This document shows positions 13,687 through 63,288 of a stretch of 64,000 nucleotides of DNA, piece by piece. Both the position numbers and the translations under genes were made by a program. The stretch is from IMG/VR virus record IMGVR_UViG_3300027736_001324, positions 124,001 through 188,000 of that record; one strand, given 5' to 3'. Numbering within the stretch: position 1 is the first letter of the stretch; each line of letters begins with the position of its first letter. A model generated the notes under the pieces. That model made no database searches. It saw nothing but the letters and a program-made list of their open reading frames with translations, and had not been told where the DNA came from.

Positions 13687-14000
13687 TGGTATATATTGTA
13701 GCATATAAATTTGAAACGGAAAAAGAATATGATGACTATATGCAGAATGAAGATGATTTTAAGTTGATGACTTGGTTAGTTGATAACAACATAACTGTCA
13801 TTGATGCTGAAGATTGTACTGATTTAGTAGATAATAAAGAGGTAATAGAGTTTAGTTTTAAATTTAAAAAAGACGCAAAAAAGTTTGCAAAGGCGTTTGA
13901 TTTAAAAGTAGAAGGGCCTTCCGAACGTGATTTCACTAACCCGTGGTTACCCCCCGATTGGAACGGTGACTGGGATAATCTACCGGGGTTCAGAGGATGA
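13683..14000 (+). CDS. hypothetical protein, likely a divergent 11th member of the FxLRW family
   Basis: LMTWLVDN helix and FSFKFKKDAKKFAKAF; ATGA overlaps at both ends. Confidence 0.65.
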   Translation: MMVYIVAYKFETEKEYDDYMQNEDDFKLMTWLVDNNITVIDAEDCTDLVDNKEVIEFSFKFKKDAKKFAKAFDLKVEGPSERDFTNPWLPPDWNGDWDNLPGFRG

Positions 14001-14608
14001 GAATAGATAGTGATATTGACATTGACTTTGGTTCAAGAGATAAATTGCTTGAACTGATTAAACATACAAGCGCAGCAATGCGTAATGTCAATCCTATTCG
14101 TAAACATGCTACTGGTGTATATGTTACACCTATTCCCTATGATCCAATACATGATATCGCAAGTATTGACTATACAGAAGCCGAGAAGCGTGGTTACTTC
14201 AAACTAGATTTGTTGAATGTTCATGTTTATGAGAATGTCAGAGATGAACAACATCTTAATGAATTGATGGTTGAGCCTGATTGGAGTAAACTGAAGGATA
14301 AATCTTTTGTTGAAAAACTTATTCACTTGAATAATCAGTACTACAATTTAGAGAAGATGCCAGAACCTATAGATAGTATCCCAAGATTATCTATGTTTTT
14401 AGCAGTTATTCGTCCTGGTAAAAAGCATTTGATTGGGAAATCTTGGAGTGAGATTAGTAAAACTGTATGGGATAAGGGAACTGATGGGTATGTATTCAAA
14501 CGTAGTCATAGTGTAGCCTACGCACAACTAGTAGTTGTTCACATGAATTTGTTAGGGCATTCTCTTAACGAGGGTGATGCTACGGCGTTTACTACGGCGT
14601 TTACTTAA
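13997..14608 (+). CDS. DnaE (Pol III alpha)-like mini-polymerase, C-terminal half with catalytic palm and reduced fingers
   Basis: SDIDIDF, KHATGVYV, GYFKLDLL, AVIRPG and GYVFKRSHSVAYA match DnaE PDIDIDF, KHAGGVVI, GLVKFDFL, ALxRPG and YGFNKSHSAAYA. Confidence 0.85.
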   Translation: MRIDSDIDIDFGSRDKLLELIKHTSAAMRNVNPIRKHATGVYVTPIPYDPIHDIASIDYTEAEKRGYFKLDLLNVHVYENVRDEQHLNELMVEPDWSKLKDKSFVEKLIHLNNQYYNLEKMPEPIDSIPRLSMFLAVIRPGKKHLIGKSWSEISKTVWDKGTDGYVFKRSHSVAYAQLVVVHMNLLGHSLNEGDATAFTTAFT

Positions 14609-14932
14609 TTCATTCATACTGCACGTTGGACCGTGAACCACTACTAGACTTTTGTTAGTAAAGGTCCTTAAGTAGGGTTTAAAGGGTAGCCAATCATCCT
14701 TTAAAAACAGATTGATAGGGACAAGACGATTACTTTCCCACCACCAAACTTCTCCTAATTCTAAGAACTTTTCTTTGATTGTGTTATCGGTTATAGCACC
14801 GTAATCATATATAGTGGTGACCATGTCATCACGGTTTTGAACAATACCTACATAATCTTGGTTGGCATATGAACATACTGTAATGAACGGGTGATTTTCT
14901 GTCAATCGTTTAAAGAATTCGTTTTGGATCAT
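14552..14932 (-). CDS. hypothetical protein
   Basis: 126-aa ORF with a late-type GATAAATA box on the minus strand at 14950-14957. Confidence 0.7.
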   Translation of the reverse strand: MIQNEFFKRLTENHPFITVCSYANQDYVGIVQNRDDMVTTIYDYGAITDNTIKEKFLELGEVWWWESNRLVPINLFLKDDWLPFKPYLRTFTNKSLVVVHGPTCSMNELSKRRSKRRSITLVKRMP

Positions 14933-15019
14933 TATTTTAGTTAACAGTTTATTTATCGGGTAACCAAAGTTAATTAAATTAAAATATATAGACTAAATAC
15001 GTTATAGGAGCCTACATTT

Positions 15020-15784
15020 GTGTATTCAACATCAGTATTTTATTACGTTCAGCGCAACATTGTTGTGTTATTGTCAGGCTATTCACCGAGGAAATATATG
15101 CCAGTCTATGCCAAACCATTAACCCTACATAAGGGAGTGGATAATCAAATCCAGTTTCAATTCCTGAATCAAGAGCAAAAACCCGTAGATGTTACTGGAA
15201 AAAGTATCACTTGCCGTATATTAAACTACACAGGTAATGAAATCTTAATACAGAAAGCATTGACCTTGCAGTTTGCTGCCACCGGTATTTGTGCGTTATA
15301 TTTAAATGCTGCGGACCTTGAGAATATACAGGCTCAAAAATGCTATTATACCTTAGAAATACCAGTTAATGAGTTTGACTTCCCTGTGTTTGTGGATCAA
15401 AACGCCGGCGCCCGTGGCGAGATGAATATTGTTAATAGTGTATTACCTAACTTTGTCCCATCATACAATATCACAATCCCAACTGGGCAAGCCTTTCCTA
15501 ATAGTCCTAACAGTAATGGAAGTAGCATCACTTACACTACTAGTGTACTGAGTACTAATAACAATCCAATACTAACTATCCAAACTGAGTACATTGAATT
15601 CTATGGAAACACAACTATTCAAGGTAGCAGTATTGTGGATAATGATTGGTATGATATTGTAACTACTGAGGAAGTCTCTAATGTTACACAAACGGTTGGA
15701 TATGTAATTGAAGGATTTCATCCTTATGTTCGTATGCAATTCACTAGCAATGCGGGCGCAGTAACAAATATATTGACCAGATAA
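15020..15784 (+). CDS. putative virion structural protein (Ig-like, beta-rich)
   Basis: ACTAAATA late box at 14992, AGGAG RBS, GTG start; KGVDNQIQFQFLNQEQKPVDVTG pattern. Confidence 0.65.
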   Translation: MYSTSVFYYVQRNIVVLLSGYSPRKYMPVYAKPLTLHKGVDNQIQFQFLNQEQKPVDVTGKSITCRILNYTGNEILIQKALTLQFAATGICALYLNAADLENIQAQKCYYTLEIPVNEFDFPVFVDQNAGARGEMNIVNSVLPNFVPSYNITIPTGQAFPNSPNSNGSSITYTTSVLSTNNNPILTIQTEYIEFYGNTTIQGSSIVDNDWYDIVTTEEVSNVTQTVGYVIEGFHPYVRMQFTSNAGAVTNILTR

Positions 15785-15785
15785 T

Positions 15786-15814
15786 TTGCTTTAACATTAT
15801 GATTGTGTTACAAT
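15786..15814 (+). promoter_or_regulatory. sigma70-type promoter for primase-helicase
   Basis: TTGCTT-17 bp-TACAAT with extended TG; ATG 6 nt downstream. Confidence 0.55.
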
Positions 15815-15820
15815 CAATAG

Positions 15821-16795
15821 ATGTTTGATATCCTGTCAATAATACCCGGCAAAAAAAGAAAAACTAGTACTGGTTGGACTATCTTTAACGCGGTTTGTTG
15901 TCACCACTTTAATCATCGACCAGATCAAAGATTGCGCGGTGGCATCATGTTCGATGGGGGAAATTGGGTATATGCTTGTTTTAATTGTGGATTCAAAACA
16001 GGCTTCACTTTAGGGCAACCTATTTTAATAAAAACTAGAACATTATTAAAATGGTGCGGTATAGATGATATTCAAATTCAAAGGTGGAATTTACAAAGTC
16101 TACAGAATAAAGATTTGATAGATTTCACTCGTCCAGTAAAACAACGCATAAAGATTACCTTTAACGAACACCAATTGCCCGCCGGCGATATTGTGGATAT
16201 TAATAATCCATTGCACAAAGTATATGTAGACTATCTGCAATTGAGAAAGATAGATATTAATGCTTATCCTTTTTTAATCACTCCAAATGCAAAAGGCAGG
16301 ATGGGTAATAGAGTAATCATCCCTTACACCTATAATAATACTATAGTAGGTCATACAAGTAGATTTTTAGATGATAAAATACCTAAGTATATCAATGAAC
16401 AACAACACGGTTATGTATTTAATATTGATATGCAAAAACCAGACTGGAGCGTTTGTATTGTAACTGAAGGAATATTTGATGCATTGAGTATTGACGGTGT
16501 GGCAATAATGCATAATGATATCAATCCTGAACAAGCATTACTATTAAGCACATTGAACAAACAAATTATACTAGTCCCAGATAGAGATAAGACGGGATTA
16601 GAATTGTGTGATAAAGCATTGGAATTGGGTTATAGTGTTAGTTTACCAAATTGGGATAGTGATGTAAAAGATGTAAATGATGCAGTAGTTAAATATGGTA
16701 AATTACCTACCCTATTAAGTATACTACAATGTGCAACAAATAGTAAAATCAAAATAGAAATGCAAAGGAAAAAAATTGGCAAAGCAGGAATCTAA
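15821..16795 (+). CDS. DNA primase (gp61/DnaG-type)
   Basis: Zn-binding CC...CFNCG; TOPRIM VTEGIFDA, PDRDKTG and KDVND. Confidence 0.88.
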   Translation: MFDILSIIPGKKRKTSTGWTIFNAVCCHHFNHRPDQRLRGGIMFDGGNWVYACFNCGFKTGFTLGQPILIKTRTLLKWCGIDDIQIQRWNLQSLQNKDLIDFTRPVKQRIKITFNEHQLPAGDIVDINNPLHKVYVDYLQLRKIDINAYPFLITPNAKGRMGNRVIIPYTYNNTIVGHTSRFLDDKIPKYINEQQHGYVFNIDMQKPDWSVCIVTEGIFDALSIDGVAIMHNDINPEQALLLSTLNKQIILVPDRDKTGLELCDKALELGYSVSLPNWDSDVKDVNDAVVKYGKLPTLLSILQCATNSKIKIEMQRKKIGKAGI

Positions 16796-18218
16796 AAAAC
16801 AATTAGAATACACATCTGATGTTCAGAAGCTGTTTCTGAGGATGATGATTACAAACGCGGAATTGTATACCCGTGTTATGAATATTATGAATAGCGAGAA
16901 TTTTGATCGTTCGCTAAAACCAGTGGCTGAATTATTTAAAACACATACCGACAAATATAGAGTATTACCGGACTCTACACAAATTAAAGCAACAACCGGA
17001 ATAGATATTGACCCTATCCCAGAATTGAATGAAGGTCATTATGAATGGTTCTTTGACGAATTTGAATCATTTACCAAAAGACAAGAATTAGAACGTGCTA
17101 TTCTTAAGGCAGCAGACTTACTTGAGAAGGGTGATTTTGAACCAGTTGAAAAACTAATCAAAGATGCGGTACAAATTAGTTTACAAAGAGACATGGGTAC
17201 AGATTACTTTGCTGATCCTAAAGGTCGTATCAACAAATATTTTAATAGTGGTGGACAAGTATCAACAGGCTGGCCACAAATGGATCGTATTTTGTATGGT
17301 GGCATGAGTAGAGGTGAATTGAATATCTTTGCAGGTGGTTCAGGTTCAGGTAAATCACTTGTGATGATGAACATTGCATTAAGCTGGTTACAAATGGGAT
17401 TGAGTGGTGCATATATTACCCTGGAATTGAGTGAAGAATTAACATCGTTGCGTACAGATGCAATGTTAACCATGATGGGTACAAAAGCAATTCGTAAAGA
17501 TATTGATACAACAGAACTTAGAGTTAAGATAGCAGGTAAGAAGTCTGGAAAGTATCGGGTTAAAGCATTACCGGCACAAAGCAATGTAAATGATATTCGT
17601 GCTTATTTAAAAGAGGTGCAAATTCAAACTGGTATTAAAATTGACTTTGTTATGATTGATTACTTAGATTTGGTTATGCCAGTGTCTATTAATGTTAGCC
17701 CCACTGATCAGTTTATTAAAGATAAGTATGTAGCAGAAGAATTGCGTAATTTAGCAAAGGAACTTGGTGTCTTGTTAGTTACCGCAAGTCAGTTAAATCG
17801 TAGTGCTGTTGACGAACAAGAATTTGACCATAGTCATATTGCAGGCGGTATCAGTAAGATTAACACAGCAGATAACGTGTTTGGTATCTTCACAAGTCGC
17901 AGTATGCGTGAGCGTGGCAAGTATCAGATTCAATGTATGAAAAGTCGTAGTTCAACTGGCGTAGGAATGAAGATTGATTTAGAATATGATGTTGAGACTA
18001 TGCGTATCAGTGACCCCGGGGTCGATGGTGAACAGAGTTACACACCAAAGCCAAGCGCAAATGACATAATGAGTACATTAAAACCACAAGCTACAGTTAC
18101 AGATTATACTGTTGATCAAAGTACTGAAGAAATAACATTAGAACCGTTGACTAGAACAGTTCATGCTGAAATACAGGGATCAAAATTTAAGACATTGTTG
18201 AATTCCTTAAAGAAATAA
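16776..18218 (+). CDS. replicative DnaB-family helicase (gp41-like)
   Basis: GGSGSGKS, ITLELSE, IDYLDL and TASQLNR motifs; TTG start. Confidence 0.92.
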   Translation: MAKQESKKQLEYTSDVQKLFLRMMITNAELYTRVMNIMNSENFDRSLKPVAELFKTHTDKYRVLPDSTQIKATTGIDIDPIPELNEGHYEWFFDEFESFTKRQELERAILKAADLLEKGDFEPVEKLIKDAVQISLQRDMGTDYFADPKGRINKYFNSGGQVSTGWPQMDRILYGGMSRGELNIFAGGSGSGKSLVMMNIALSWLQMGLSGAYITLELSEELTSLRTDAMLTMMGTKAIRKDIDTTELRVKIAGKKSGKYRVKALPAQSNVNDIRAYLKEVQIQTGIKIDFVMIDYLDLVMPVSINVSPTDQFIKDKYVAEELRNLAKELGVLLVTASQLNRSAVDEQEFDHSHIAGGISKINTADNVFGIFTSRSMRERGKYQIQCMKSRSSTGVGMKIDLEYDVETMRISDPGVDGEQSYTPKPSANDIMSTLKPQATVTDYTVDQSTEEITLEPLTRTVHAEIQGSKFKTLLNSLKK

Positions 18219-18256
18219 TTATACCATACACGCATAAATACTAGTAGGATAATTAT

Positions 18257-18505
18257 ATGCAAAAACAAACCCGCTCCCTCTTGCAGGAATTAGAAGCACT
18301 CGGCAATAACCGCGATACAAGTCACATTATTGAAAGTAGGGCTCATAATATCATAACCAGTGCTATTAATTTACTTGAGTTGATTAATAAGCATTACCCT
18401 GAAGAACAGGCGCAAATATTAGAGCGAAAACTATTAAGTGCTATTAAGAGCAAAGACCAGCAGAGATTTTCTAAATCATTAAGGAAAAACCGTGAACCTA
18501 TCTGA
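18257..18505 (+). CDS. late hypothetical protein
   Basis: CATAAATA at 18233; AGGA RBS. Confidence 0.7.
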   Translation: MQKQTRSLLQELEALGNNRDTSHIIESRAHNIITSAINLLELINKHYPEEQAQILERKLLSAIKSKDQQRFSKSLRKNREPI

Positions 18506-19691
18506 ATCGTTAGCGATACTTAGAGACAAAGTAGATAAAATTGCCTCTTTGAAAGAAGATAAGGGACACCTAGATCATCCTGAAGATTTAATATTTTTGG
18601 GAGGAAGTCAGGGTGCAAATCGTGCATTACAAGCAAGTATAGCTACCGTAAAGAATCCCAAGACTGTTACTATTAAGTGGGACGGATATCCTGCATTGAT
18701 ATTTGGCCGTAATAGTCGTGGACAGTTTAGTATTATGGACAAGCATATGTTCAACAAGAAAGACGGGTCAGGTAGACAAGTATTCAGTCCAGAACAGTTT
18801 ATGCAATATGACCAAGCCAGGGGCGTAGACCGTTCAGGTCTACACTCATTAATGGCAGAGATTTGGCCAGGGCTAGCAAAATCATCTAGTGGCGGTAAAG
18901 GTTATTATTGGGGGGATTTGTTATTCAGTCAACCATTATCAGAAAAGAACGGTATCTACATGTTCAAAGCGAATCCCAAAGGCATTACGTATAAAGTAAA
19001 TGCCGAAAGTGATTTAGGTAAATTAATGGCTGGCAAGCAAGCTGGTATCGCTGTGCATCAATATCTAGCACCTAATGCCATGACAACAGATGATGCTAGT
19101 ACATTAGATGGAACTATAGGGCAGCTAAAGAATAATAGCAATGTTGCTATTGTCCCTAGTGCTATGCCTATTACCCCCAAGATGAAAATCAACACATCTT
19201 TAGTTAAAAGTACTCAAAATGCTATTAAAAGTTACGGAGCATTAGTGGATCAATTTATGGATAATGCCCCCCAAGCACGTAATTCATTTAATCAATTGTT
19301 TACAGTATTCATTAACAAACGAATCGTAGAGGGTAACTTAAATGATTTAGCACAAGGCTTTATGGATTTTGTAAAAGCTAGACCCATGACAGAACCTATG
19401 CGTAAGAAATTGTTAGGATACACTACATTAGATCCAAAGACAAAGAAAGAAGTACTTGTTCCTGGATACTTACAACAGAATGCCGAAGCAATTAAGGGGG
19501 CATTTACTATTTGGGTAGAGATGTACAAGTTAAAAATGTCTATCGTAGAACAGCTTAATCAAGCAGCAAAAGAATCCCCGGTCAAAGGATATTTAGATGA
19601 TGGTACTGAAACACATGAGGGTTTTGTATCTAATGGCTTAAAATTCGTTGATAGAATGGGTTTTAGTCGCCAAAATCTAGCCGGCCGCTAA
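18492..19691 (+). CDS. putative RNA-ligase/covalent nucleotidyltransferase-fold protein (DUF6267-like)
   Basis: HLDHPED, motif I TIKWDG, motif IV HEGFV, motif V KFVDR; N-terminal LSE/LKE leader. Confidence 0.6.
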   Translation: MNLSESLAILRDKVDKIASLKEDKGHLDHPEDLIFLGGSQGANRALQASIATVKNPKTVTIKWDGYPALIFGRNSRGQFSIMDKHMFNKKDGSGRQVFSPEQFMQYDQARGVDRSGLHSLMAEIWPGLAKSSSGGKGYYWGDLLFSQPLSEKNGIYMFKANPKGITYKVNAESDLGKLMAGKQAGIAVHQYLAPNAMTTDDASTLDGTIGQLKNNSNVAIVPSAMPITPKMKINTSLVKSTQNAIKSYGALVDQFMDNAPQARNSFNQLFTVFINKRIVEGNLNDLAQGFMDFVKARPMTEPMRKKLLGYTTLDPKTKKEVLVPGYLQQNAEAIKGAFTIWVEMYKLKMSIVEQLNQAAKESPVKGYLDDGTETHEGFVSNGLKFVDRMGFSRQNLAGR

Positions 19692-19772
19692 GCCAAATCC
19701 GTGTTTTTTTTAGTTCTGGCATAAATAAGTGTATGAAGCAGTAGGCTTCAACTTATTTAAAGGCATTTCAAA

Positions 19773-20162
19773 ATGGCACAATTTACAAAAACAAACGGTG
19801 ACTTTCTACCGGTAATCAACTTTGATTCATTCTCATACACCAACAGTGGTGCAAACGCAGTTAGTTCTGCTGCTACAGTACAACCTCAAGGTCCTAAACT
19901 AGACTTCTTCACAGTTACAGCAGCTAGTTCAGGTGCTTTCTCTGGTACTCAAGTTAGCTTGATCATCCAAGCTACACAACAATTAGCTACAGTTTACATC
20001 TATGAGTTTACAACTGCGGGTCCTGATACATTGGCAATGGCTGTGTATCCAACTGGCGCTTGGACAACTACTACATTGAACGCAGCTATCATTGCTGAAT
20101 TGACAGCAGGTGGTGTTGCTAACACAACTGTTACTACAGCTACAGCTACATTCACAGGTTAA
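19773..20162 (+). CDS. putative abundant virion structural protein
   Basis: late box at 19720, own terminator, Thr/Ala-rich composition. Confidence 0.65.
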   Translation: MAQFTKTNGDFLPVINFDSFSYTNSGANAVSSAATVQPQGPKLDFFTVTAASSGAFSGTQVSLIIQATQQLATVYIYEFTTAGPDTLAMAVYPTGAWTTTTLNAAIIAELTAGGVANTTVTTATATFTG

Positions 20163-20175
20163 TCAATATCTGTAT

Positions 20176-20205
20176 AAAAAACCCTAGATTTTCTAGGGTT
20201 TTTTT
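20176..20205 (+). terminator. rho-independent terminator
   Basis: AAAAAACCCTAGA-TTT-TCTAGGGTTTTTTT. Confidence 0.85.
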
Positions 20206-20224
20206 ACCTCTGTTAAATAGTAGT

Positions 20225-20671
20225 ATGAGTTACATTATCTCTTGCTATACCCTATTTGATATCACGCAAACTAATGTACCAAACCGCCATCGTCCTGATA
20301 TGGACAAAGAATGGCATCATAAACGCAATACACAAAGTAATTTTGACACGGTGCAACAAGCAATCTCATTACGTAGCCAGCCCGATGTTGTTCGTATCCC
20401 TGAAAAAATAGAAATAAGATTTGACGAATTCACTGAGTTTGGGTTCTTATTTGAGCAACAAGATAAAGAGACTTATCCATGCTGGAACTTTGATTTTGCG
20501 GTACAACATCCTAGTGTGTTTTATGATGGTGTAACTGAATTGGGAGCATTATATAGAGATTGTGACCAAGTACCAATGATTAAATGCCATACTGAATGGG
20601 ACCAACTCCCCACATTCTTAGATACTAGCGATGAGTTGAGAAATATATATTTTAAAGTGTTAACCAAATGA
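20225..20671 (+). CDS. hypothetical protein
   Basis: CYTLFDIT...RNTQSNFDTVQQAISLRSQP; late box 5 nt before the ATG. Confidence 0.75.
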   Translation: MSYIISCYTLFDITQTNVPNRHRPDMDKEWHHKRNTQSNFDTVQQAISLRSQPDVVRIPEKIEIRFDEFTEFGFLFEQQDKETYPCWNFDFAVQHPSVFYDGVTELGALYRDCDQVPMIKCHTEWDQLPTFLDTSDELRNIYFKVLTK

Positions 20672-21141
20672 TAAGCGACAAACTACTGCACAAATTTACA
20701 AAAACAATATCCAATCAAGAAATGGAAAAATTAAGCGAATTAACTATAATTCAAGGCCCGGAAGGTTCTTATTTTCTATTCAATCAATATGCAATTAAAA
20801 AAAACAATGATTGTTATATAGTGGAAAAAGATAATATAGCAGGAACCAAATCATTCAATGTGTTAAAAAACGCAGTATCTTGGTGTACATTTGATAAACG
20901 AAACAGTATATATGAATCCAATCGGATTTTAGATTTAGACAATAGATTATCTAGTGTAGATACTGAGATTCAATTGCATCAAAAATTGGTAAAAAAGTCC
21001 AAAAATTTAGAAGAAAAATTGATTTACCTAGCTAAATTGGGTGAAGAAAAGATGGAACGCAAGCAGATAGCCGACGAATTAGCAGGTTATGTGAATAGTT
21101 CCAGAATTTGGCAAGACAAACGATTTAACAAATCCGCATAA
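20668..21141 (+). CDS. hypothetical protein with coiled-coil C-terminus
   Basis: ATGA overlap; 157 aa. Confidence 0.7.
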   Translation: MISDKLLHKFTKTISNQEMEKLSELTIIQGPEGSYFLFNQYAIKKNNDCYIVEKDNIAGTKSFNVLKNAVSWCTFDKRNSIYESNRILDLDNRLSSVDTEIQLHQKLVKKSKNLEEKLIYLAKLGEEKMERKQIADELAGYVNSSRIWQDKRFNKSA

Positions 21142-21189
21142 TAACGAAAGAAAAGATAAATATATTATATATTTCTCTGGAATACAAAT

Positions 21190-21900
21190 ATGAAACTAAC
21201 TGAATTAAACCACAATCGCCGCTCTTTCTCTACTAAAGTATTGAAAGAACAGTACGAAACCTCATTTAACGTAGATGGTATGTCCATGTCATCTACCCGC
21301 ACTATGCTTCAAAAAGTACGTGGGTTACTGAGTGAGTCAAAGCAATCTCCTGACTATCATAATAGTCAATCATCAAATTCTTATATGAAATTGGTGTTCA
21401 TGGAGCAAGCACTTAGTGACCACTACAACGAACTACGTTCACTTCCACAGCCAAGAATCATGGTTGAGAATGAAGAAGTTGAGAAGTCACAAGTTGTATT
21501 AGCAGCGCAAGACATGGTAGACCAAGTACAGAAGATGCTTGAAGATGTAGGTCAGATGCAAGTTAAAGAATTGCCTGCGTTAGTATCAAGCATTGAAAGC
21601 GAAATTGGTGTTAACGAAAGTCAAACATACAATGATCAAGTTTCAGGTCAATTAGATACATTATCTGCTTCATTGAAAGAAGCATCAACTGCATTAAAAA
21701 ATGCGTTGAATGGTTTAACTGGTCAAGCAGTAGACGCAGCATTTGATGCTGGTGCTGACATGGGTGCAGAAGCAGGGGTAGATGCTGGCATGGACGCAGG
21801 CATGGATGCTGGTGCTGATATGAGTATGGGTGATGTTCCCCCTCCTGCTGAAGAACCAGATATGCCCCCATCAGGTGGTGTTGGTAGAGCAAAGAGATAA
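21190..21900 (+). CDS. putative prohead core/internal head protein
   Basis: GATAAATA at 21155; LTE, LKE, LSE and MVE motifs; coiled coil and acidic AGMD-repeat tail. Confidence 0.6.
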   Translation: MKLTELNHNRRSFSTKVLKEQYETSFNVDGMSMSSTRTMLQKVRGLLSESKQSPDYHNSQSSNSYMKLVFMEQALSDHYNELRSLPQPRIMVENEEVEKSQVVLAAQDMVDQVQKMLEDVGQMQVKELPALVSSIESEIGVNESQTYNDQVSGQLDTLSASLKEASTALKNALNGLTGQAVDAAFDAGADMGAEAGVDAGMDAGMDAGADMSMGDVPPPAEEPDMPPSGGVGRAKR

Positions 21901-21901
21901 T

Positions 21902-22234
21902 ATGTTTCTCTTTGAACTTGCTGATCCGGCGAGTGCTAAACTTATCGTTCTTGTCAATCAACTTAAAACTGATTTAGATAACGGTATAATAGATCCTAGT
22001 AGTTACACGACGGACGAGTTTTTAACTTATCTACAAGATAAAGGTGATATTGTTTTAGATGTCACCGACTTGTATGATATGATAAAGAACCCTCCTTTAA
22101 ATACTGTAATTAAAAATATTCAAGGTGATCAGATTATCTTCAAAGGACATGATGAGACTCCGGAAAATCCAGATCAATCACAAAGTCAACAAGTTGTACA
22201 ACAAATGGCACAAAGTGCTATGCCAACACAATGA
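21902..22234 (+). CDS. hypothetical protein (true start 21902)
   Basis: starts MFLFEL one base after the previous stop; ATGA overlap with iscA. Confidence 0.65.
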   Translation: MFLFELADPASAKLIVLVNQLKTDLDNGIIDPSSYTTDEFLTYLQDKGDIVLDVTDLYDMIKNPPLNTVIKNIQGDQIIFKGHDETPENPDQSQSQQVVQQMAQSAMPTQ

Positions 22235-22551: not shown

Positions 22552-22580
22552 TTGACATTAGTATTATAATCAACTATAAT
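22552..22580 (+). promoter_or_regulatory. sigma70 promoter for the exonuclease
   Basis: TTGACA-17 bp-TATAAT; ATG 8 nt downstream. Confidence 0.75.
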
Positions 22581-22588
22581 TTACTATA

Positions 22589-23275
22589 ATGTACAATCCA
22601 AACAAATACAACTATATACTCATGAGCAGGGTAGAAATTGAAGGCAAACGTAGATATGCTACACCAGATGGTGAGAAACTTCCAAGCGTTACAACAATAC
22701 TAGACGCAACCAAGTCAGAAGAAAGTAAACAAGCATTACATAACTGGCGCAAACGAGTTGGTGTTCAAAAAGCACAAGAGATTACAACTGAGGCAGCAGG
22801 ACGTGGCACACGTATGCACAAGTTTCTTGAGGATTATATCAAGACAGGTATAGTTACTGAGCCTGGCAGCAATCCCTACAGTATTCAAAGTCACAAAATG
22901 GCAAAGCAAATTATTGAACAGGGATTAGTGAAATGTAACGAATACTGGGGAACAGAAGTTCCTTTATACTTCCCTAAAATCTATGCAGGCACAACTGACT
23001 TGTGCGGGGTGCATGATGGAAGTGATGCTATTATGGACCACAAACAATCTAACAAATTCAAAAAGCGTGAGTGGATTGACGATTACTTTATTCAACTAGC
23101 AGCGTATGCCAATGCTCACAATGAAGTACACGGGACTAAGATACGCAAAGGCGTCATTTTTATGTGTACCGCTGATGTTGTTTATCAGGAATTCATCATT
23201 GAAGGTACTGAATTTGACAAGTATAGTGACATGTGGTTTAAGCGGGTAGAGCAATACTATATGAAATTTGTATAG
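22589..23275 (+). CDS. PD-(D/E)XK exonuclease
   Basis: PSVTTIL, RGTRMH, AGTTD...IMDHKQS and QLAAYA motifs. Confidence 0.85.
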   Translation: MYNPNKYNYILMSRVEIEGKRRYATPDGEKLPSVTTILDATKSEESKQALHNWRKRVGVQKAQEITTEAAGRGTRMHKFLEDYIKTGIVTEPGSNPYSIQSHKMAKQIIEQGLVKCNEYWGTEVPLYFPKIYAGTTDLCGVHDGSDAIMDHKQSNKFKKREWIDDYFIQLAAYANAHNEVHGTKIRKGVIFMCTADVVYQEFIIEGTEFDKYSDMWFKRVEQYYMKFV

Positions 23276-23326
23276 CGGTTAAGTCAATATTATGATAAAT
23301 AAGTGTAAACGTGAAGAATTACACTT

Positions 23327-26656: not shown

Positions 26657-26683
26657 TAATAAATAAGATATAGGAATAATAAA

Positions 26684-27241: not shown

Positions 27242-27272
27242 ATTTTACTCCTTAAGATAAATATATAATACA

Positions 27273-27326: not shown

Positions 27327-27345
27327 ATATTTCAAGGAGAAACAA

Positions 27346-28620: not shown

Positions 28621-28621
28621 T

Positions 28622-29363: not shown

Positions 29364-29382
29364 ACTATGATTTATCACAGTA

Positions 29383-47360: not shown

Positions 47361-55751
<8,391 letters not shown>

Positions 55752-55766
55752 CATTGAAAGTTGATA

Positions 55767-56855
55767 ATGGGAATATCATTTGGACCAATGCGAATATCGG
55801 GATTTACTGCGGTAATAATTTCAGTACCTAATGCACCCACAGTAGGTACTGCAACTGCTACTGGAACAACAACAGCTACATTAACTTATACTGCCCCTGC
55901 ATATAACGGTGGCTCTACTATAACTAGTTATACTGCAACCTCAAATCCCGCCGGCGGATCTGGTACATTGAGTCAAGCAGGGTCAGGCACTATTAATATT
56001 ACTGGATTATCACCGGGTACAGCATATACATTTACTGTTACTGCAACAAATTCAATTGGTACAAGTTCTCCTAGTTCTGCAAGCAATCAAATTACTACAA
56101 CCGCAGCAGCCGGGCAACAAGCATATACAACTGCTGGATACTATATATGGACAGCACCAGCTGGCGTAACATCAGTTAGTGTAGTTACAATAGGCGGCGG
56201 CGGCGGAGGATATAATAATGCAGGTGGAGGTGGTGGCCTAGGCTGGCAAAATAATATTGCAGTTGTGCCGGGAAATACATATCCGGTTTACGTTGGTCCC
56301 GGTGGCGCAGGATCTTTTTCGTCACCGGATTGTGATGGAAGTGCATCACATTTTAATAATTCAGTTTTTGGCAATGGAGGATTGGGCGGCGGCAGCGGCG
56401 GGTCAGGTGGTGGATATTCAGGCGCCACCGGTGGCGGCACGGGCGGCAACGGCGGAACCTTTTGGGGAGGCTACGGCGGCGGCGGTGGCGCCGGCGGCTA
56501 CTCAGGTAACGGCGGGAACGGATCAACTGCTAGCAACCAGAATGGTAGCGATGGCGCAGGAGGAGGTGGCGGCGGTGGCGGCGGGTCGGTTAGCGGCGGC
56601 TCACAAAGAGCCGGTAACGGCGGAGGTGTAGGAATATATGGTCAAAGTAACAATGGTGCCGGCGGGGTCTATGATATTGACGGTGGTCGCGGAGGAGGTG
56701 GAGGTTCGGGCGGCAGCTCCGGGGCATCTGCTACATATGGTGTAGCGGGTGGTGCATACGGCGGAGGAGGTTCAGGCGGTGCTTGTCCAGGCGGCGACGG
56801 AGCCGTATATATAGTCTGGCCTGGATCAACACGATCTTTCCCGTCAAGTATATAG
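55767..56855 (+). CDS. fibronectin type III plus glycine-rich domain virion protein
   Basis: PNAPTVG...NGGSTITSY...GLSPGTAYTFTVTATNSIG (Fn3); WTAPAGVTSVSVVTIGGGGGG glycine-rich domain. Confidence 0.8.
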   Translation: MGISFGPMRISGFTAVIISVPNAPTVGTATATGTTTATLTYTAPAYNGGSTITSYTATSNPAGGSGTLSQAGSGTINITGLSPGTAYTFTVTATNSIGTSSPSSASNQITTTAAAGQQAYTTAGYYIWTAPAGVTSVSVVTIGGGGGGYNNAGGGGGLGWQNNIAVVPGNTYPVYVGPGGAGSFSSPDCDGSASHFNNSVFGNGGLGGGSGGSGGGYSGATGGGTGGNGGTFWGGYGGGGGAGGYSGNGGNGSTASNQNGSDGAGGGGGGGGGSVSGGSQRAGNGGGVGIYGQSNNGAGGVYDIDGGRGGGGGSGGSSGASATYGVAGGAYGGGGSGGACPGGDGAVYIVWPGSTRSFPSSI

Positions 56856-56906
56856 GTCATCAACAACCTTCAATCAAAACGATAAATACTATAATAAGGA
56901 AGTATT

Positions 56907-57527
56907 ATGGTAACACTAGATTTATTGACACATATGTGTCCCCGAACAAAATCAAGTATTCTTGAGGGATACTTAGAACCACTAAACACAGTGGCTGAAT
57001 ACTATGACATGAATGTTAATCCAGCAAGATTGGCAGGCTTTCTAGCACAAACAGCACATGAATCCGGTGGATATACTGCTATTAAAGAAAATTTAAACTA
57101 TAGTGCTAAGGGTCTACGTGGTACATTTGGTAAATATTTTCCCAACGATGAACTAGCAAATCAATATGCTAAAAAGCCAGAACGTATTGCTAATCGTGTC
57201 TATGCTAATCGTATGAGTAATGGCCCAGAAGAATCAGGTGATGGATATCGCTTCTGTGGTCGTGGACTAATTCAATTAACAGGTCGTGCTAACTATACAA
57301 AATTTGCAGCAGATTTAGGCATGAGTTTAGAAGATACAATAGCTTACTTAGAAACGCCAAACGGTGCTGTAGCAAGTGCTGGATGGTTCTGGGATAATAA
57401 CAAACTAAATCAATACTGTGATAGTGGAGATTTTGTAACATTAACTAAACGTATCAATGGTGGTACAATTGGTTTAGAAGATAGAAAGCATCATTACGAA
57501 TTAGCGATGCATTATTTAACAAGTTAA
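56907..57527 (+). CDS. GH19 chitinase-like lysozyme (endolysin)
   Basis: FLAQTAHESGG, ENLNYS, GRGLIQLTGRANY and INGGTIGL motifs; late box at 56881. Confidence 0.92.
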   Translation: MVTLDLLTHMCPRTKSSILEGYLEPLNTVAEYYDMNVNPARLAGFLAQTAHESGGYTAIKENLNYSAKGLRGTFGKYFPNDELANQYAKKPERIANRVYANRMSNGPEESGDGYRFCGRGLIQLTGRANYTKFAADLGMSLEDTIAYLETPNGAVASAGWFWDNNKLNQYCDSGDFVTLTKRINGGTIGLEDRKHHYELAMHYLTS

Positions 57528-57528
57528 T

Positions 57529-60324
57529 ATGGCACAACCAACTTGGATTACCCCCGCAGGTTCTATAGGAACTTATCCCTATGGATATACTATGACTTTT
57601 TTGGTTTCAGCCACTCCAGTGGATCCGGCAGCTACAATAACATATACTTTATTATCCGGATCACTTCCTACTAATCTAACATTGAAAACAAGTAACGGAT
57701 TAATAAGTGGTGTACCTACACTAGTTACACAAAATACTACAACTTCATTTACTATTCGTGCAACTGATAACTTGGGTAATATACGTGACAGGACGTTTAG
57801 CATAACCGTGTCAGGGACTGCTGTACCACAATTTACCACTCCCGCTGGTTCGTTGAAAAATGTAAACGATAGCACATGGACACAAATTCAAGTACAATAC
57901 GCTAATCCTGATACGACAAATAATGTAATAGTTGATTTGCAAGAAGGACTATTACCTCCGGGGCTTGAATTATCTGAATCAGGGCTTATTCAAGGTTATG
58001 CACTCCCGCCAATAATTAATTTAACACTACCCACTGTAACAACTGTAGCATTGTCATCAAGTTCAACTACTGATTATATTTCATGTTTTGACAATTCTAT
58101 AAACAGTACTATGATAGGAAGACCGGTTGTATTTACTAATACATTCGGGGATATTGTATCTAATCAAACTTACTATATAAGAGATGTTAATACATCAAAT
58201 AATTCATTTTCAATATCTGCTACTGAATTTGGTACTGCATTACCATTGGCCGATGCGTCGGGCACAATGAATGTTACGTTACCGAGTATCTCTACCGGAC
58301 AACCCACAAAAAGAACATATTCATTTGTGTTAAGACTATTAAGCCCACTTGGCGGCAATATTGCTTCTTATTCAATTACTGTTATTAATCAAAACTTGCC
58401 CTTAAGTCAAGGGGGTACATTAGGATTACAGCCTAATACTAGACCACCAACTATATTAAATACAAGACCATTAGTTATTGCTCCAACTGATAATGATCCA
58501 TATTATGGTTATTATATTTTACCACCTATCCCACCTACACAGGCTGCACAAATAGGAACAATTCAAAGTGATAACTACTTTGCATTTAAAGTGTTAGGCT
58601 ACGATTTTGATGGAAATAATTTAGAATATATATTCTCTAACTTGCCAAGTTGGATGTCAGGTAATTCAACTACAGGATGGTTGACTGGATATCCTATATT
58701 AGATGTAAAGAGTATAATTAATTATAATTTTACAGTAAGCGTGAGAAAAGTAAATAGCCCATCTATAACATCAGGTAATTTTAATTTCTCACTTACATTA
58801 AGTTTTGATATATTAGGTAATATTATATGGATTACTACTGAAAATTTAGGGACTGTTTACAACGGTAGTATCAGTACATTAAAAGTTGAAGCAGTATCTG
58901 ACACAGAAGATTTACAATATAGATTAACTTCAGGATCATTACCTCCTGACTTAGAATTGTTATCTAACGGAGAAATAATAGGTATTATAGCGGATCAACC
59001 TACATCACAAATGTTAGATGCATCCACTACTACTAATTTTAGTTTCACAGTACAGGCATATTCAACTACATATAATTCAATATTTTCTAGTAAAACATTT
59101 GAAGTAAATGTATATCAAGAATATAATCAACCAACTGACATATTGTACATAGAAGCATCGCCTAGCATACAGGATAGACAACTTCTTAATACATTATTAG
59201 ATAATGACGCTCTAATAGACCCTCTATTATTATATAGACCAACTGACGTTCATTTTGGAAAAGCTACTAATGTTATATATGAACATGCGTATGGAATATA
59301 TGCTAGTGATATAAATCAATATATTGCAGCAATACAAAGAAAAAATCACTATTGGAGAAATATTACTTTAGGTGAATTAAAAACTGCGGTGGCAAAAAAT
59401 GATGCAGGCGAGATTATATATGAAGTGGTGTATAGTGAAGTAATAGATAACTTAGTTAATCCGTCCGGTGTAAGTGTTCCTGCTGAAATAAACTGGCCTC
59501 GCCCAATAGATTTAAATTTAGGGGCATGGTATACTAGTGTAACTAATATTTTTACAAGCTATTATTTTGGTCAACCGGGAAGTACGTTAAGTGTAACTGC
59601 TACTGCTGCCACAACCAATCAGATTACTTGCGGTTCAACTGTGGGTTTATTGTCAGGTAGACAAATAATGTTTTCTGGCACTACTTTTGGAAACATTGAA
59701 GCAGGTACTACTTATTATGTTCTTAGTGTTGATAGTACAACTGAATTCACGGTATCTACTACCCCCTACAATGGGACTGCTATGGTATTAACTACTGATA
59801 CAGGTTTGATGGATTGTATTATATATGAGCCTACCTTCTATACCAGTTTAACTCCGGGCTATGCTATAACGTTATATCCTAATAGTTTGTTCAATATGCG
59901 TAATCAAGTAGCCGATGTATTAGGACAAGTGTATAATAGTACATTATTACCGCAATGGATGACGAGTCAACAAGAAAATGGTAGTACATTGGGATATACT
60001 CAGGCTTGGGTTATATGTTATACAAAACCAAGAGAAACCGGTGGAATAAGTCCTGCGGAAGTTATAAAAACAAATATAGAAACAAATTGGGGATATACAA
60101 ACGCACAAGGTAACTTTGTACATTACTCATTGAATCAAATTAATTTTGAACTTGATAGATTTACCGTTAATAAGAGTGCTACATATGATTGGGATAATGG
60201 ATTAAACCCACCTGCTTGGACCGGACTACCAAGTGCTACCCCTACTCCCAATCCATTAAATAGCCAAGATTTTTATGTGTTATTCCCTAGACAAACTATT
60301 TTACCGGACGAATCACAATACTAA
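57529..60324 (+). CDS. baseplate wedge-like protein with Ig-like repeats
   Basis: repeated SGSLPxxLxL..GLISG Ig-like units; C-terminal LPQWMTSQQ...LGYTQAWVICYTKP. Confidence 0.7.
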   Translation: MAQPTWITPAGSIGTYPYGYTMTFLVSATPVDPAATITYTLLSGSLPTNLTLKTSNGLISGVPTLVTQNTTTSFTIRATDNLGNIRDRTFSITVSGTAVPQFTTPAGSLKNVNDSTWTQIQVQYANPDTTNNVIVDLQEGLLPPGLELSESGLIQGYALPPIINLTLPTVTTVALSSSSTTDYISCFDNSINSTMIGRPVVFTNTFGDIVSNQTYYIRDVNTSNNSFSISATEFGTALPLADASGTMNVTLPSISTGQPTKRTYSFVLRLLSPLGGNIASYSITVINQNLPLSQGGTLGLQPNTRPPTILNTRPLVIAPTDNDPYYGYYILPPIPPTQAAQIGTIQSDNYFAFKVLGYDFDGNNLEYIFSNLPSWMSGNSTTGWLTGYPILDVKSIINYNFTVSVRKVNSPSITSGNFNFSLTLSFDILGNIIWITTENLGTVYNGSISTLKVEAVSDTEDLQYRLTSGSLPPDLELLSNGEIIGIIADQPTSQMLDASTTTNFSFTVQAYSTTYNSIFSSKTFEVNVYQEYNQPTDILYIEASPSIQDRQLLNTLLDNDALIDPLLLYRPTDVHFGKATNVIYEHAYGIYASDINQYIAAIQRKNHYWRNITLGELKTAVAKNDAGEIIYEVVYSEVIDNLVNPSGVSVPAEINWPRPIDLNLGAWYTSVTNIFTSYYFGQPGSTLSVTATAATTNQITCGSTVGLLSGRQIMFSGTTFGNIEAGTTYYVLSVDSTTEFTVSTTPYNGTAMVLTTDTGLMDCIIYEPTFYTSLTPGYAITLYPNSLFNMRNQVADVLGQVYNSTLLPQWMTSQQENGSTLGYTQAWVICYTKPRETGGISPAEVIKTNIETNWGYTNAQGNFVHYSLNQINFELDRFTVNKSATYDWDNGLNPPAWTGLPSATPTPNPLNSQDFYVLFPRQTILPDESQY

Positions 60325-60346
60325 ATATATATAACGGAATAAAAAC

Positions 60347-61879
60347 ATGAGTACAATCAACACAACCGCAATAAATGTAAATTACCCTGTCCCGGGCGTT
60401 AACAATAACAGCCAGGGATTCAGAGATAATTTTGCTTCTATCGTAAACAATTTAAATGCCGCCGGCAATGAAATAACTGACCTACAAAATAAAGTTGTAG
60501 TTAAACAAGCATTACTAGGCACTACAATTAATAATGATATGGCTAATACACTTATCAGTAATGCAAGTACACGTGGCTTTAGAGCAACAACTTATAATTT
60601 AGGTAACGCATTAGCCGGTACTGTACTAGTTGATGTGTCATTAGGTGATGTACAGTATGGAACAGTTGCTGCAAATACTACAATCAATTTTGGTAGTTGG
60701 GCACCAACTGGTACTCAAAGCAATGTGCAACTAAATCTATCAGTTTCAAATGCTAATGCTGTAATCAGTTTTCCAAGTGAATTAGTAATCTCCAATGATG
60801 ATGGTGTTATGTTACTTGAAAACTTTGCTAATATTGGTACTATACCAACTGTTACAGTACCAAATGGAGTAACACAACTTAACTATTTGATAAGTTCAAC
60901 TGATTGCGGCAACACATTGTATATTCAACCAATCAATAGACCAAGACAATCAACTCAGATTCAACAAAAACTTATTTCCCCTAAAGGATTTCAAGGTGAT
61001 GTTAATGGTGATATCGCAGTTGGGCCATCGTTTAATCAATTATCTGTGTTATCGTCAAATACAGGAATGTCTCTGTCTACCGTAGTGATTTCAAATACTT
61101 CAGGTGGGTTTACTTGTAGTGCGACATCATTACCATTAGCAGTGGATCAACAATTGAGAATATCTGGAACTGCAGGTGGCACAGGTAGTATCAGTGGGTA
61201 TTCAGATCCTAGTACATATTATATTATAGCTACCAATGGAACAACTAACTTTCAATTATCAACTACTAGCGGCGGCTCAAACATTACAACAACAACCGGA
61301 ACACCTACTGGTTTAACATATAAAGTTAATAATGGATATTTAAATGTAGCAGATACTACTCAACTATATACCGATTTGCCAATTGTATTCACTGGTACTA
61401 GTTTTGAAGCTAATATCACTAGCGGTGCTACATATTATGTTAGAAATGTTTCTGCTAATACATACTTTACAGTTTCATCAACTATTGGTGGTGCCAATGT
61501 AAACTTGGCAGGCGGGTCTGGTACAATGTATGCAAACCCAGTGTCGTATGTATATGTCGCTACAGACTCATATAATTCTTCATCATACGGAACATCAGTA
61601 ACACAAACATATGCTAATGGCATGATAACCTTAAGTGGCAATACTGGAAGTTTAGCAAATAATGCCCCAATCATTTTTGCTGCTAATATGGGAGGATTAG
61701 TTTCAAACACTGTTTATTATGTTAAATCCTTCTCCGGCGCCAATATTACAGTAAGTTTAAGTAGATCAAATGGAGTAGCAGATACTACCGTTGTCCTATC
61801 TGGTAATACTACTGCAACAACTGCAACATTCTATGTTGGCAATGATATCTGGAAAAGAATCGCACTATCTTCTTGGTGA
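60347..61879 (+). CDS. baseplate/tail structural protein
   Basis: YPVPGVNNNSQGFRDNF...EITDLQ; C-terminal WKRIALSSW; late box at 60320. Confidence 0.72.
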   Translation: MSTINTTAINVNYPVPGVNNNSQGFRDNFASIVNNLNAAGNEITDLQNKVVVKQALLGTTINNDMANTLISNASTRGFRATTYNLGNALAGTVLVDVSLGDVQYGTVAANTTINFGSWAPTGTQSNVQLNLSVSNANAVISFPSELVISNDDGVMLLENFANIGTIPTVTVPNGVTQLNYLISSTDCGNTLYIQPINRPRQSTQIQQKLISPKGFQGDVNGDIAVGPSFNQLSVLSSNTGMSLSTVVISNTSGGFTCSATSLPLAVDQQLRISGTAGGTGSISGYSDPSTYYIIATNGTTNFQLSTTSGGSNITTTTGTPTGLTYKVNNGYLNVADTTQLYTDLPIVFTGTSFEANITSGATYYVRNVSANTYFTVSSTIGGANVNLAGGSGTMYANPVSYVYVATDSYNSSSYGTSVTQTYANGMITLSGNTGSLANNAPIIFAANMGGLVSNTVYYVKSFSGANITVSLSRSNGVADTTVVLSGNTTATTATFYVGNDIWKRIALSSW

Positions 61880-61890
61880 TAAATATTTGA

Positions 61891-62154
61891 ATGGAACATC
61901 CATTCTTAGATAAGAAAAAACTGGCCGAAAAGACATTAGAGGAAATCCAGACTGATTTAACCGGTCTGATGAATAAACTAACCTTTGCTTCTCGTACAGG
62001 TAATAGGCCATTAATTAATCAGCTTCATATGGTAATTGAAACGTATCGTAATGAAGCCAGCAAAAAACTTGACGATGTTATGAAAAAACAAAACATTCAA
62101 GGTCAAGTATCAATACAAAAAGAGGATCAAATTGGCAACAAAAATAGAACGTGA
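61891..62154 (+). CDS. hypothetical protein
   Basis: late box 5 nt before the ATG. Confidence 0.7.
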   Translation: MEHPFLDKKKLAEKTLEEIQTDLTGLMNKLTFASRTGNRPLINQLHMVIETYRNEASKKLDDVMKKQNIQGQVSIQKEDQIGNKNRT

Positions 62155-62737
62155 ATTCGCATTCCAAGCTGGGGTTTATTTTGAAGGTGAATTCTTAATG
62201 ACCATATATGAACTTGCATTAAAAATGGAAGTTGATACAGCATCTATTAAAGAACAGAATATAGCAATGGACAGAATACATTACTTCTTGCATGAATGTT
62301 TGGGTAATAGTATCTTTGTACAAGATTCAGAAAAAAAAGCTATAGAAAAGTATATGCAAGCTGATATCAAAGTCTGTACATTACCTGACGAACCATATGA
62401 TCAAATCATAACCATATTATTATTGCTTAAACTAAATGCAATAACAGAAGGCAAACTGCATATTACCGATATTTCACTTATGTCTGGGTTAAGTGATGAT
62501 GTTAAATTTGTATATGACATAGAAAATGTGTCTAATCACCCATTTGGTAATAAGGGCTGGTGGAGTGATAGTTCTACTAATATGTCAGATATAACCAAAT
62601 CTAACAAAAAGGATAAAATTGTTAGACTGGTAAAACAACATTCTGATTGGTGGAGCGTTGGGTTAGATTGGGAACAAAAAGAATATACCACTACTGAAAT
62701 TATTTTTAGTAATGACCATGAAAAACAACCATTATAG
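62132..62737 (+). CDS. hypothetical protein
   Basis: GAGGA RBS, TTG start, 201 aa. Confidence 0.72.
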   Translation: MATKIEREFAFQAGVYFEGEFLMTIYELALKMEVDTASIKEQNIAMDRIHYFLHECLGNSIFVQDSEKKAIEKYMQADIKVCTLPDEPYDQIITILLLLKLNAITEGKLHITDISLMSGLSDDVKFVYDIENVSNHPFGNKGWWSDSSTNMSDITKSNKKDKIVRLVKQHSDWWSVGLDWEQKEYTTTEIIFSNDHEKQPL

Positions 62738-62766
62738 TTGATTTACACAAAAGTCTATGTTATAAT
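62738..62766 (+). promoter_or_regulatory. sigma70-type promoter for the DnaE N-half
   Basis: TTGATT-17 bp-TATAAT with extended TG; ATG 6 nt downstream. Confidence 0.7.
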
Positions 62767-62772
62767 ACATAG

Positions 62773-63288
62773 ATGAAAATTGATAATTATGGACAAATAA
62801 TTCTCACAGAAGATGATCTGTGTGATTTGTATATGAGTGATCCAGCCCGCACCATTAAAGATTGTCTTGTAGATAAGCAAATAAATCTGGACAGTACGCA
62901 CATCTTTCTCTCAGAAGAAAATCTACCTACATTAGTAGAATACATAGATAAAAAATTATCAGTTGAAGAATTTGATAAAGAAAATCAATCTCAGTGGCAA
63001 ATGCCCGTAGAATACTACGAAATGGATATTGCTAAATGGGTATTAGATCAATGTAAAAACGAAGAAGAACTGCAACGTGCAGGCAACGAATTAATAAAAT
63101 TCCATGATAGGGATATGTTCCCATTATTGAAGTATTTAAAATATCTAGTTGACACAATGCGTAGAAACAATATTGTATGGGGCGTAGGTCGTGGTAGTAG
63201 TGTAGCAAGCTATGTATTGTATTTGATTGGAATTCATCGTATAAATAGTTTGTACTACCAATTATCGGTAGATGAATTTTTAAAATAA
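62773..63288 (+). CDS. DnaE (Pol III alpha)-like mini-polymerase, N-terminal half
   Basis: R...EL..F...M..LLKY...LVD..R..NIVWGVGRGSSVASYVLYLIGIHRINSLYYQLSVDEFLK matches DnaE VGPGRGSAAGSLVAYxLGITxIDPLxYDLLFERFL. Confidence 0.85.
   Translation: MKIDNYGQIILTEDDLCDLYMSDPARTIKDCLVDKQINLDSTHIFLSEENLPTLVEYIDKKLSVEEFDKENQSQWQMPVEYYEMDIAKWVLDQCKNEEELQRAGNELIKFHDRDMFPLLKYLKYLVDTMRRNNIVWGVGRGSSVASYVLYLIGIHRINSLYYQLSVDEFLK

Follow-up and report, generated by a model that had tools for sequence, protein, structure and literature searches.

Can one polymerase active site be built from two genes that lie tens of kilobases apart? The question is raised by a 64,000-nt stretch of DNA, positions 124,001 to 188,000 of the IMG/VR virus record IMGVR_UViG_3300027736_001324 (hereafter the window), whose source contig, 3300027736_001324, is 263,709 bp long. 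It holds two open reading frames (ORFs) that resemble consecutive parts of a C-family (DnaE-type) polymerase, and we give a probability of about 0.75 to the reading that they are two subunits of one minimal nucleotidyltransferase module of that family. Both lie on the same strand, 48.8 kb apart, and the gene for the C-terminal part (C-half) comes before the gene for the N-terminal part (N-half). An earlier note, made from the letters alone, had described both ORFs, and the coordinates, lengths and motifs that it quoted all hold:

13997 to 14608, plus strand: C-half of a split minimal DNA polymerase III (Pol III) alpha, 203 aa; assigned by ORF, motifs, phrog_11778 and an AlphaFold2 (AF2) model
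62773 to 63288, plus strand: N-half of the split minimal Pol III alpha, 171 aa; assigned by ORF, motifs, PF07733 and phrog_11127

The arrangement is already known in kind, as the note had suspected. A split minimal Pol III alpha was described for group 2.2 (Rak2/PA5oct/Atu_ph07-like) jumbo phages by Iyer, Anantharaman, Krishnan, Burroughs and Aravind (2021, Viruses 13:63, PMC7824862), and PHROGs and many GenBank records label both halves. The window pair shares with that system two distant genes, an N-half with the part for nucleoside triphosphate binding, a C-half with the part for Mg and template binding, and the phage group as judged by gene content; nothing differs in kind, and the window carries an orthologue in an uncultured phage. 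Fused variants, conserved neighbourhoods, an N-half promoter, a lineage-specific exonuclease and selection estimates, all of which are treated below, were not found in the text of PMC7824862.

Motif map, break point and family assignment

With the E. coli K-12 dnaE gene product, taken from its RefSeq record, as motif reference, the blocks of the two halves correspond as follows:

GRGS: E. coli DnaE 361; N-half 139 (GRGS at N139-142)
FERFLN: E. coli 388-393; DEFLK at N-half 167-171, its final residues
DxDxD aspartates: E. coli D401, D403 and D405; C-half D6, D8 and D10
KHAGGV: E. coli 510; KHATGV at C-half 36
KxD: E. coli K553-D555; C-half K69-D71
RPG: E. coli 639; C-half 139
FNKSH: E. coli 756; FKRSH at C-half 167

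Residues ~92-171 of the N-half, which ends in ...LSVDEFLK, are equivalent to the beginning of the DnaE palm and include the triphosphate-binding GRGS motif (hG[GS]), while residues 1-90 form a small N-terminal region that was modelled poorly. The C-half starts with MRIDSDIDIDF, only 5 residues ahead of the DxDxD strand, and continues through KHATGV (KHAxGV), GYFKLDLL with the third catalytic Asp in KxD, and a base of the fingers with IRPG and FKRSHSVAYA (RPG and FK(R/K)SH). In polymerases of this type the GS motif and the carboxylates are parts of the same minimal Pol-beta-type core. The break point lies inside this core, in a 7-residue linker from FERFLN to PDFDVDF, and because it separates the GS motif from the metal-binding DxD strand, neither half carries a complete active site. 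The note had placed the break between the GRGS block and PDxDxD with all three Asp kept, and both the motif mapping and the conservation described below bear this out.

The two halves sum to 374 aa, against 1160 aa for cellular DnaE. Motif mapping against E. coli DnaE shows that the thumb and finger tips are deleted from the C-half. The distance from DxD to KHAxGV is 30 residues in the phage versus 109 in E. coli, and the ~79 residues deleted here fall at the position of the thumb in DnaE. From RPG to KSH there are ~89 residues fewer than in E. coli DnaE, and the C-half stops 32 residues past FK(R/K)SH versus ~400 in E. coli, with nothing beyond approximately E. coli residue 790. Pfam searches of both halves found no PHP (PF02811), OB or any other domain besides PF07733, in agreement with what the note had seen for PHP and OB. 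By Pfam and motif spacing combined, the pair does not have the architecture of full-length DnaE, since PHP, thumb, beta-clamp-binding, HhH and OB parts are all missing.

By sequence profile comparison, the relationship of the halves to DnaE is far beyond chance. A search against DNA_pol3_alpha, which had been proposed as a check, was positive for the N-half: PF07733 (DNA_pol3_alpha, DnaE/PolC) matched at 35.1 bits against a cut-off of 23.9, with residues 92-170 on profile positions 16-94, and it is also matched by the fused homologues introduced below. The N-half profile aligns with Taq DnaE 384-455 and E. coli DnaE 324-393, through its final residue at FERFLN. Both halves match PHROGs labelled DNA polymerase (N-half, phrog_11127, 2.9e-40; C-half, phrog_11778, 5.8e-56). 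In an hhalign comparison of the C-half with E. coli DnaE, just the RPG stretch aligned. The AF2 model of the C-half, made from an 86-sequence alignment, reached a predicted local distance difference test score (pLDDT) of 93.5; in the PDB, DnaE structures account for each of its 10 top-ranked matches (E 2.4e-3 to 0.14), below which there is only noise, and in BFVD it is matched best by full-length DnaE-type polymerases of phages. The BFVD fold matches also include A0A249Y020 (E 0.02), a viral protein of 374 aa, which is the length of the fused versions.

Residues ~187-203 of the C-half (14555-14605) form a variable tail of low model confidence (pLDDT ~50-60). In the window clade and in Paride this tail has acidic followed by aromatic residues (…TAFTTAFT, …DPFKLFS), a pattern that is absent in Atu_ph07, GAP32, Phosso and SCTP-2. 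Judged by its composition, the tail could be a clamp-binding peptide.

Conservation, co-occurrence and natural fusions

Alignments drew on sequences from the window, IMG/VR and protein searches. Across 86 C-half homologues with 27-57% identity, D6, D8, K69, D71 and P140 are invariant and D10, H37, G40, R139, K142, K168 and H171 nearly invariant; among N-halves, GRGS is invariant. Pairwise Nei-Gojobori estimates against IMG/VR relatives gave a median ratio of nonsynonymous to synonymous substitution (dN/dS) of 0.11 for the C-half (26 pairs) and 0.08 for the N-half (15 pairs). Values of ~0.1 together with invariant catalytic residues indicate that both genes are under purifying selection and not decaying; a ratio near 1 had been named in the note as the sign of decay.

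The distribution of the two genes is almost the same. A tblastn search of 50,697 phage records found the C-half in 96 and the N-half in 95, with an identical taxon profile; the sole mismatch is one Klebsiella record, and the collection includes partial Klebsiella records. Carriers are Rak2/121Q-like coliphages, PA5oct-like Pseudomonas phages, Atu_ph07, Phosso, SCTP-2, GAP32, CBB and others. The best identity to cultured-phage proteins is 36-47% (PA5oct, Atu_ph07, Phosso, SCTP-2, GAP32), and near-identical DNA was not found among cultured phages, the window phage itself being uncultured. Both halves co-occur on every large IMG/VR contig in both match lists, and at least 8000 metagenome protein clusters (90% identity) match each half. 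From Pseudomonas, Agrobacterium and Salicola phages to the window phage, the two genes keep their length, break point and synteny, so that the co-occurrence and the shared break point for which the note had proposed to look were both found.

In relatives with both matches listed, the halves are on the same strand, with the C-half gene usually lying 5' of the N-half gene. The distance from C-half to N-half varies:

Rak2-like phages: ~31 kb
GAP32: 34 kb
PA5oct-like phages: 44 kb
SCTP-2: 116 kb
Atu_ph07 and Phosso: more than 180 kb

Because the gene order is permuted relative to the protein, a simple frameshift, stop codon or intervening element is excluded as the cause of the split. In Atu_ph07, the RefSeq coding sequence of the C-half starts 66 nt downstream of the tblastn match start (L001 4001-4066); as the annotated protein is without the DxDxD strand, its start codon was probably mis-called.

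Natural fused versions connect the halves directly. An exhaustive phmmer search with the C-half (373 matches at E <= 0.001) yielded P0289, a protein of 375 aa in which residues 79-180 match the N-half at 35% identity and residues 190-371 match the C-half. Its N-part ends in ...IKEFIK and is followed by a 10-residue linker and then DFDID, which places the junction exactly at the split break point. A length-restricted search for proteins of fused size added 2 clusters at 78-81% identity, and a cluster look-up added 2 more members. The five fused variants (P0289, P0391, P0392, P0409 and P0410; 375-376 aa) come from at least 8 contigs in several samples, and their loci were analysed on these contigs:

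L123 to L126 and L208: metagenome contigs that carry a fused gene

One fused-gene contig is a 33-kb phage sequence with fibre repeats, ribosomal protein S21, thymidine kinase and S-adenosylmethionine synthetase. The fused gene occupies the C-half locus, and downstream of it lie homologues of two window genes, the reverse ORF (14552-14932) and the structural gene (15020-15784). In the tree of 86 C-halves, rooted at midpoint only, the fused sequences cluster in a shallow clade with support 100; this clade groups with the standalone P0393 and P0397 (support 96), and the whole grouping is nested inside split forms; the simplest reading of this tree is that the fused lineage arose by secondary re-fusion. 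An adjacent N-half upstream of P0397 was considered and rejected, as the upstream ORF is a homologue of the zinc-finger protein phrog_11058, and P0397 is truly standalone. Whichever the rooting, the fused variants are Rosetta-stone evidence that the halves make one functional unit.

The P0289 protein was modelled as a single chain from an alignment in which N-halves and C-halves stood as separate, unmodified rows. The model is a compact module with pLDDT 86.2 and a predicted template-modelling score of 0.84. Among its PDB matches, DnaE and PolC structures take all of the top 18 places (E 3.4e-8 to 6.6e-4, probability 1.00), the 19th match having E = 1.6, and the query-normalised TM-score against DnaE structures is 0.54-0.57. 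By profile, motif and fold criteria, the pair is a C-family (Pol-beta-fold) polymerase catalytic core. It shares with bacterial DnaE (E. coli 2HNH, Thermus aquaticus 2HPI/3E0D) the GS motif, three Asp, KHAxGV, RPG and KSH in the same order, as well as the fold of the palm and finger base. In contrast to bacterial DnaE, it has approximately one third of the size, consists of two polypeptides, carries an invariant Glu in place of R390 and is without PHP, thumb, finger tips, beta-clamp-binding, HhH, OB and tau-binding parts.

Several points weigh against reading the pair as one polymerase module. The C-half alone failed the proposed DNA_pol3_alpha check, having no Pfam match at all, and a hidden Markov model search with the C-half alignment against PDB sequences gave a spurious GCN4 match alone. 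Foldseek E-values of the C-half model alone are modest (2e-3). The Glu that is invariant in N-halves replaces E. coli R390 within FERFLN, and this replacement, together with the lack of a thumb, means that DNA handling must differ from that of DnaE. The transcription set-ups of the N-half and the C-half also differ (see below), and no experimental work on activity was found in the literature searched.

The missing parts could also be understood if the pair had a Pol-beta-fold nucleotidyltransferase activity but was no templated polymerase, serving instead as a terminal transferase, a modifier of DNA or RNA ends or a synthase of nucleotide signals. DnaE holds the primer-template with thumb, HhH, clamp-binding and OB elements, all of them absent here, and the ~79 and ~89 residues deleted between conserved motifs point the same way. 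However, the finger motifs that remain, RPG, FK(R/K)SH and KHAxGV, belong specifically to C-family polymerases and hardly vary, the fold matches are confined to DnaE and PolC, and both genes stand in replication blocks, one with primase-helicase and the other with a clamp loader. We therefore regard a non-polymerase role as unlikely, while treating it as the most serious of the alternatives.

A lower standing goes to the idea that the halves act independently or with other partners, for example with one of them as a non-catalytic replisome adaptor. Spacings of 31 to more than 200 kb between the genes in relatives, along with different neighbours and promoter arrangements, are what independent functions might look like, but the catalytic residues are invariant in both halves, co-occurrence is near-perfect, dN/dS is similar and one lineage carries the two as an in-frame fusion. 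Taken together these observations make independent halves quite improbable. Decay of a captured dnaE, to which the very short 374 aa against the 1160 aa of cellular DnaE might point, is refuted by dN/dS of ~0.1, by at least 8000 clusters per half and by the conserved length, break point and synteny.

Post-translational joining by a split intein is just as remote. Cyanobacterial DnaE (Synechocystis, Nostoc) is likewise a C-family polymerase encoded by two distant genes, and there the full length is restored by protein trans-splicing, with the break elsewhere in the protein; the phage pair, in contrast, has no intein fragments and a break inside the catalytic core. No extra sequence flanks this break: the N-half stops where DnaE reads FERFLN, and in the C-half just 5 residues precede the first Asp, without the Cys, Ser or Thr context expected at +1 after an intein C-fragment. 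DnaE homology extends through the final residue of the N-half and begins near residue 2 of the C-half, so that intein fragments would have nowhere to sit, which agrees with the note's statement that neither half carries an intein tag.

Gene neighbourhoods and expression of the two halves

The C-half belongs to a replication block with the following members:

7454 to 8941: UvsW-type helicase, by PHROG match
9992 to 10726, plus strand: phrog_11058 protein (3.1e-57), 244 aa, with a C2H2-like zinc-finger start (weak Pfam hint)
13126 to 13686, plus strand: DEDD-type 3'-5' exonuclease, Rv2179c-like (phrog_255, 1.1e-42; PF16473, 6.6e-33)
13683 to 14000, plus strand: 105-aa ORF with ATGA overlaps on both sides, coupling the exonuclease gene to the C-half
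14552 to 14932, minus strand: convergent ORF, 126 aa (phrog_11637, 6.7e-31)
15821 to 16795, plus strand: primase
16776 to 18218, plus strand: gp41/DnaB-type helicase

The primase, the gp41-type helicase and the UvsW-type helicase are matched by phrog_47, phrog_19 and phrog_16. The block runs from the UvsW-type helicase through three conserved proteins of unknown function (phrog_11279, phrog_11758 and phrog_11058), an insert of ~3.3 kb, the 105-aa ORF and the C-half to the convergent phrog_11637 ORF, a structural protein, the primase and the gp41-type helicase. The stretch from phrog_11058 through C-half, reverse ORF, structural protein and primase to helicase has the same order in Atu_ph07, Paride, GAP32, Phosso and SCTP-2. 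In these phages and in L207 a phrog_11058 homologue adjoins the C-half; in the window the two are parted by the insert, which is lineage-specific and contains small ORFs and the DEDD exonuclease. At its 3' end, the phrog_11637 ORF runs 57 nt into the end of the C-half gene, and its overlap, position and orientation are the same in all cultured relatives examined and beside the fused genes.

The exonuclease lies upstream of the C-half in all 64 close IMG/VR relatives with enough flank (64/64) and was not found at the C-half loci of the cultured relatives examined. Its candidacy as a family-wide conserved proofreading partner was rejected because of this absence. The 105-aa ORF has no PHROG or Pfam family match. 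The window has a second exonuclease gene at 22589-23275 on the plus strand (phrog_298).

The N-half has its own surroundings:

62738 to 62766, plus strand: sigma70-type promoter-like element, TTGATT, 17-nt spacer and TATAAT with a TG extension (scan 10/12)
63299 to 63661, plus strand: phrog_14844 protein, 120 aa, directly downstream of the N-half and conserved

Past the end of the window, the source contig (L013) continues with a gp31/GroES-like gene (phrog_931), a 103-aa ORF, a gp44-type clamp loader (phrog_168, 1.4e-69) and PhoH, and the downstream order is repeated in five cultured relatives. The ~48 kb between the halves contain tail genes, including sheath, tube, a 2796-aa collagen-like fibre and an endolysin. 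The N-half had been described as embedded among late genes. It does border the tail and lysis block, and it heads a small replisome-accessory block, with the GroES-like and clamp-loader genes, at that border. Jumbo phages of the group 2 type carry T4-like replication genes and a family B polymerase; of such genes, the UvsW-type helicase, primase, gp41-type helicase and gp44-type clamp loader were found on this 263.7-kb contig. No tRNA genes were found in the window. The collagen-like tail-fibre gene (47361-55751, plus strand) has ~50% G+C, versus ~37% in the rest of the window.

Sigma70-type promoters had been claimed ahead of both halves, and the claim stands for the N-half only. The 35-nt gap 5' of the N-half consists wholly of the TTGATT-17-TGTTATAAT element, which ends 6 nt before the ATG. 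Counts of promoter-like matches near both halves are not above chance overall, and the element by itself would be weak evidence; it is made credible by its conservation across relatives. Element and fixed distance to the ATG recur in 57/86 distinct homologue upstream sequences versus 29/2220 random positions, while the spacer diverges. From this pattern we infer a real N-half promoter, which would give a leaderless or near-leaderless mRNA.

The C-half is differently placed. Its ATG overlaps the stop codon of the 105-aa ORF (ATGA), and the ATG of that ORF overlaps the exonuclease stop in the same way, so there is no intergenic space for a promoter of its own; by this gene layout, the C-half is translationally coupled to the upstream ORFs. 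The nearest sigma70-like matches stand ~800 nt further 5', where the exonuclease ORF begins, in a region where counts are at chance. The T4-type late promoter TATAAATA has 4 matches versus 10 expected, none of them usefully placed upstream of either half.

Co-expression of the halves, which the note had proposed, appears plausible by analogy with PA5oct. In that phage sigma70-like TTGAC/TATAATA promoters stand at mapped transcription start sites (PMC7318152), and from 15 min on its structural genes are reported to be transcribed at the same time as its replication genes (PMC7318152). The PA5oct orthologues of the halves, EST35_0220 and EST35_0288, carry no virion-protein flag, unlike genes next to them.

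The window also contains five near-identical sigma70-type elements on the plus strand (4140-4168, 4468-4496, 5243-5271, 5569-5597 and 6261-6289). Each has TTGACA, a conserved 17-nt spacer and TATAAT and lies ~30 nt upstream of a small ORF, and a loose pattern of the family has 7 matches versus 0.58 expected. On this sequence pattern, they are probably early promoters of the phage.

Predicted role and significance

By sequence, the two ORFs divide the module between them. The N-half has the first palm strand and helix, with the GS motif for the triphosphate of the incoming nucleotide. The C-half has the strand with two metal-binding Asp, the third Asp and a trimmed base of the fingers (RPG, KSH), and the halves are predicted to assemble non-covalently into an obligate heterodimer. 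As the GS motif and carboxylates share one core, each half alone should be inactive. Since PHP, thumb, HhH, clamp-binding and OB parts are missing, the enzyme probably works distributively and relies on replisome partners of the phage, for which the conserved neighbour proteins and the clamp system are candidates. A possible functional analogy is Bacillus subtilis DnaE, which, working with PolC, extends RNA primers before hand-off. That enzyme is full length, has a single chain and had its role shown biochemically; the likeness is functional only, in that the phage pair too would be an accessory C-family enzyme alongside another main replicase, with a gene next to primase and helicase.

The module would act beside a family B replicase in short synthesis, that is, primer extension, gap filling or repair. 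Such a short-patch role is suggested by the primase-helicase and clamp-loader neighbours and by the presence of a family B replicase in the phage group (PMC7824862), and the pair is probably an accessory enzyme and not the main replicase. Iyer et al. also infer an accessory short-synthesis role beside the family B replicase (PMC7824862).

Could the split itself serve a purpose? One hypothesis is that it is a control device and no neutral accident, with the core forming only when two differently regulated units are both on, namely the coupled primase-helicase operon and the leaderless transcript that a dedicated sigma70 promoter would give at the clamp-loader block. We consider this speculation unlikely. 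If it were true, a second, gated polymerase would extend primers or fill gaps for the family B replicase, and in the rare re-fused lineage nature would have tested what happens when the gate is lost.

To our knowledge, a core of ~370 residues cut within an active-site motif is the smallest known form of the bacterial replicase fold. It is also very common, with at least 8000 metagenome clusters for each half and about 96 cultured jumbo phages, including the therapy candidates PA5oct and Paride. The natural fused variants offer a convenient single-chain construct for a first biochemical and structural test. The same core has been put forward as a model of the ancestral enzyme (PMC7824862).

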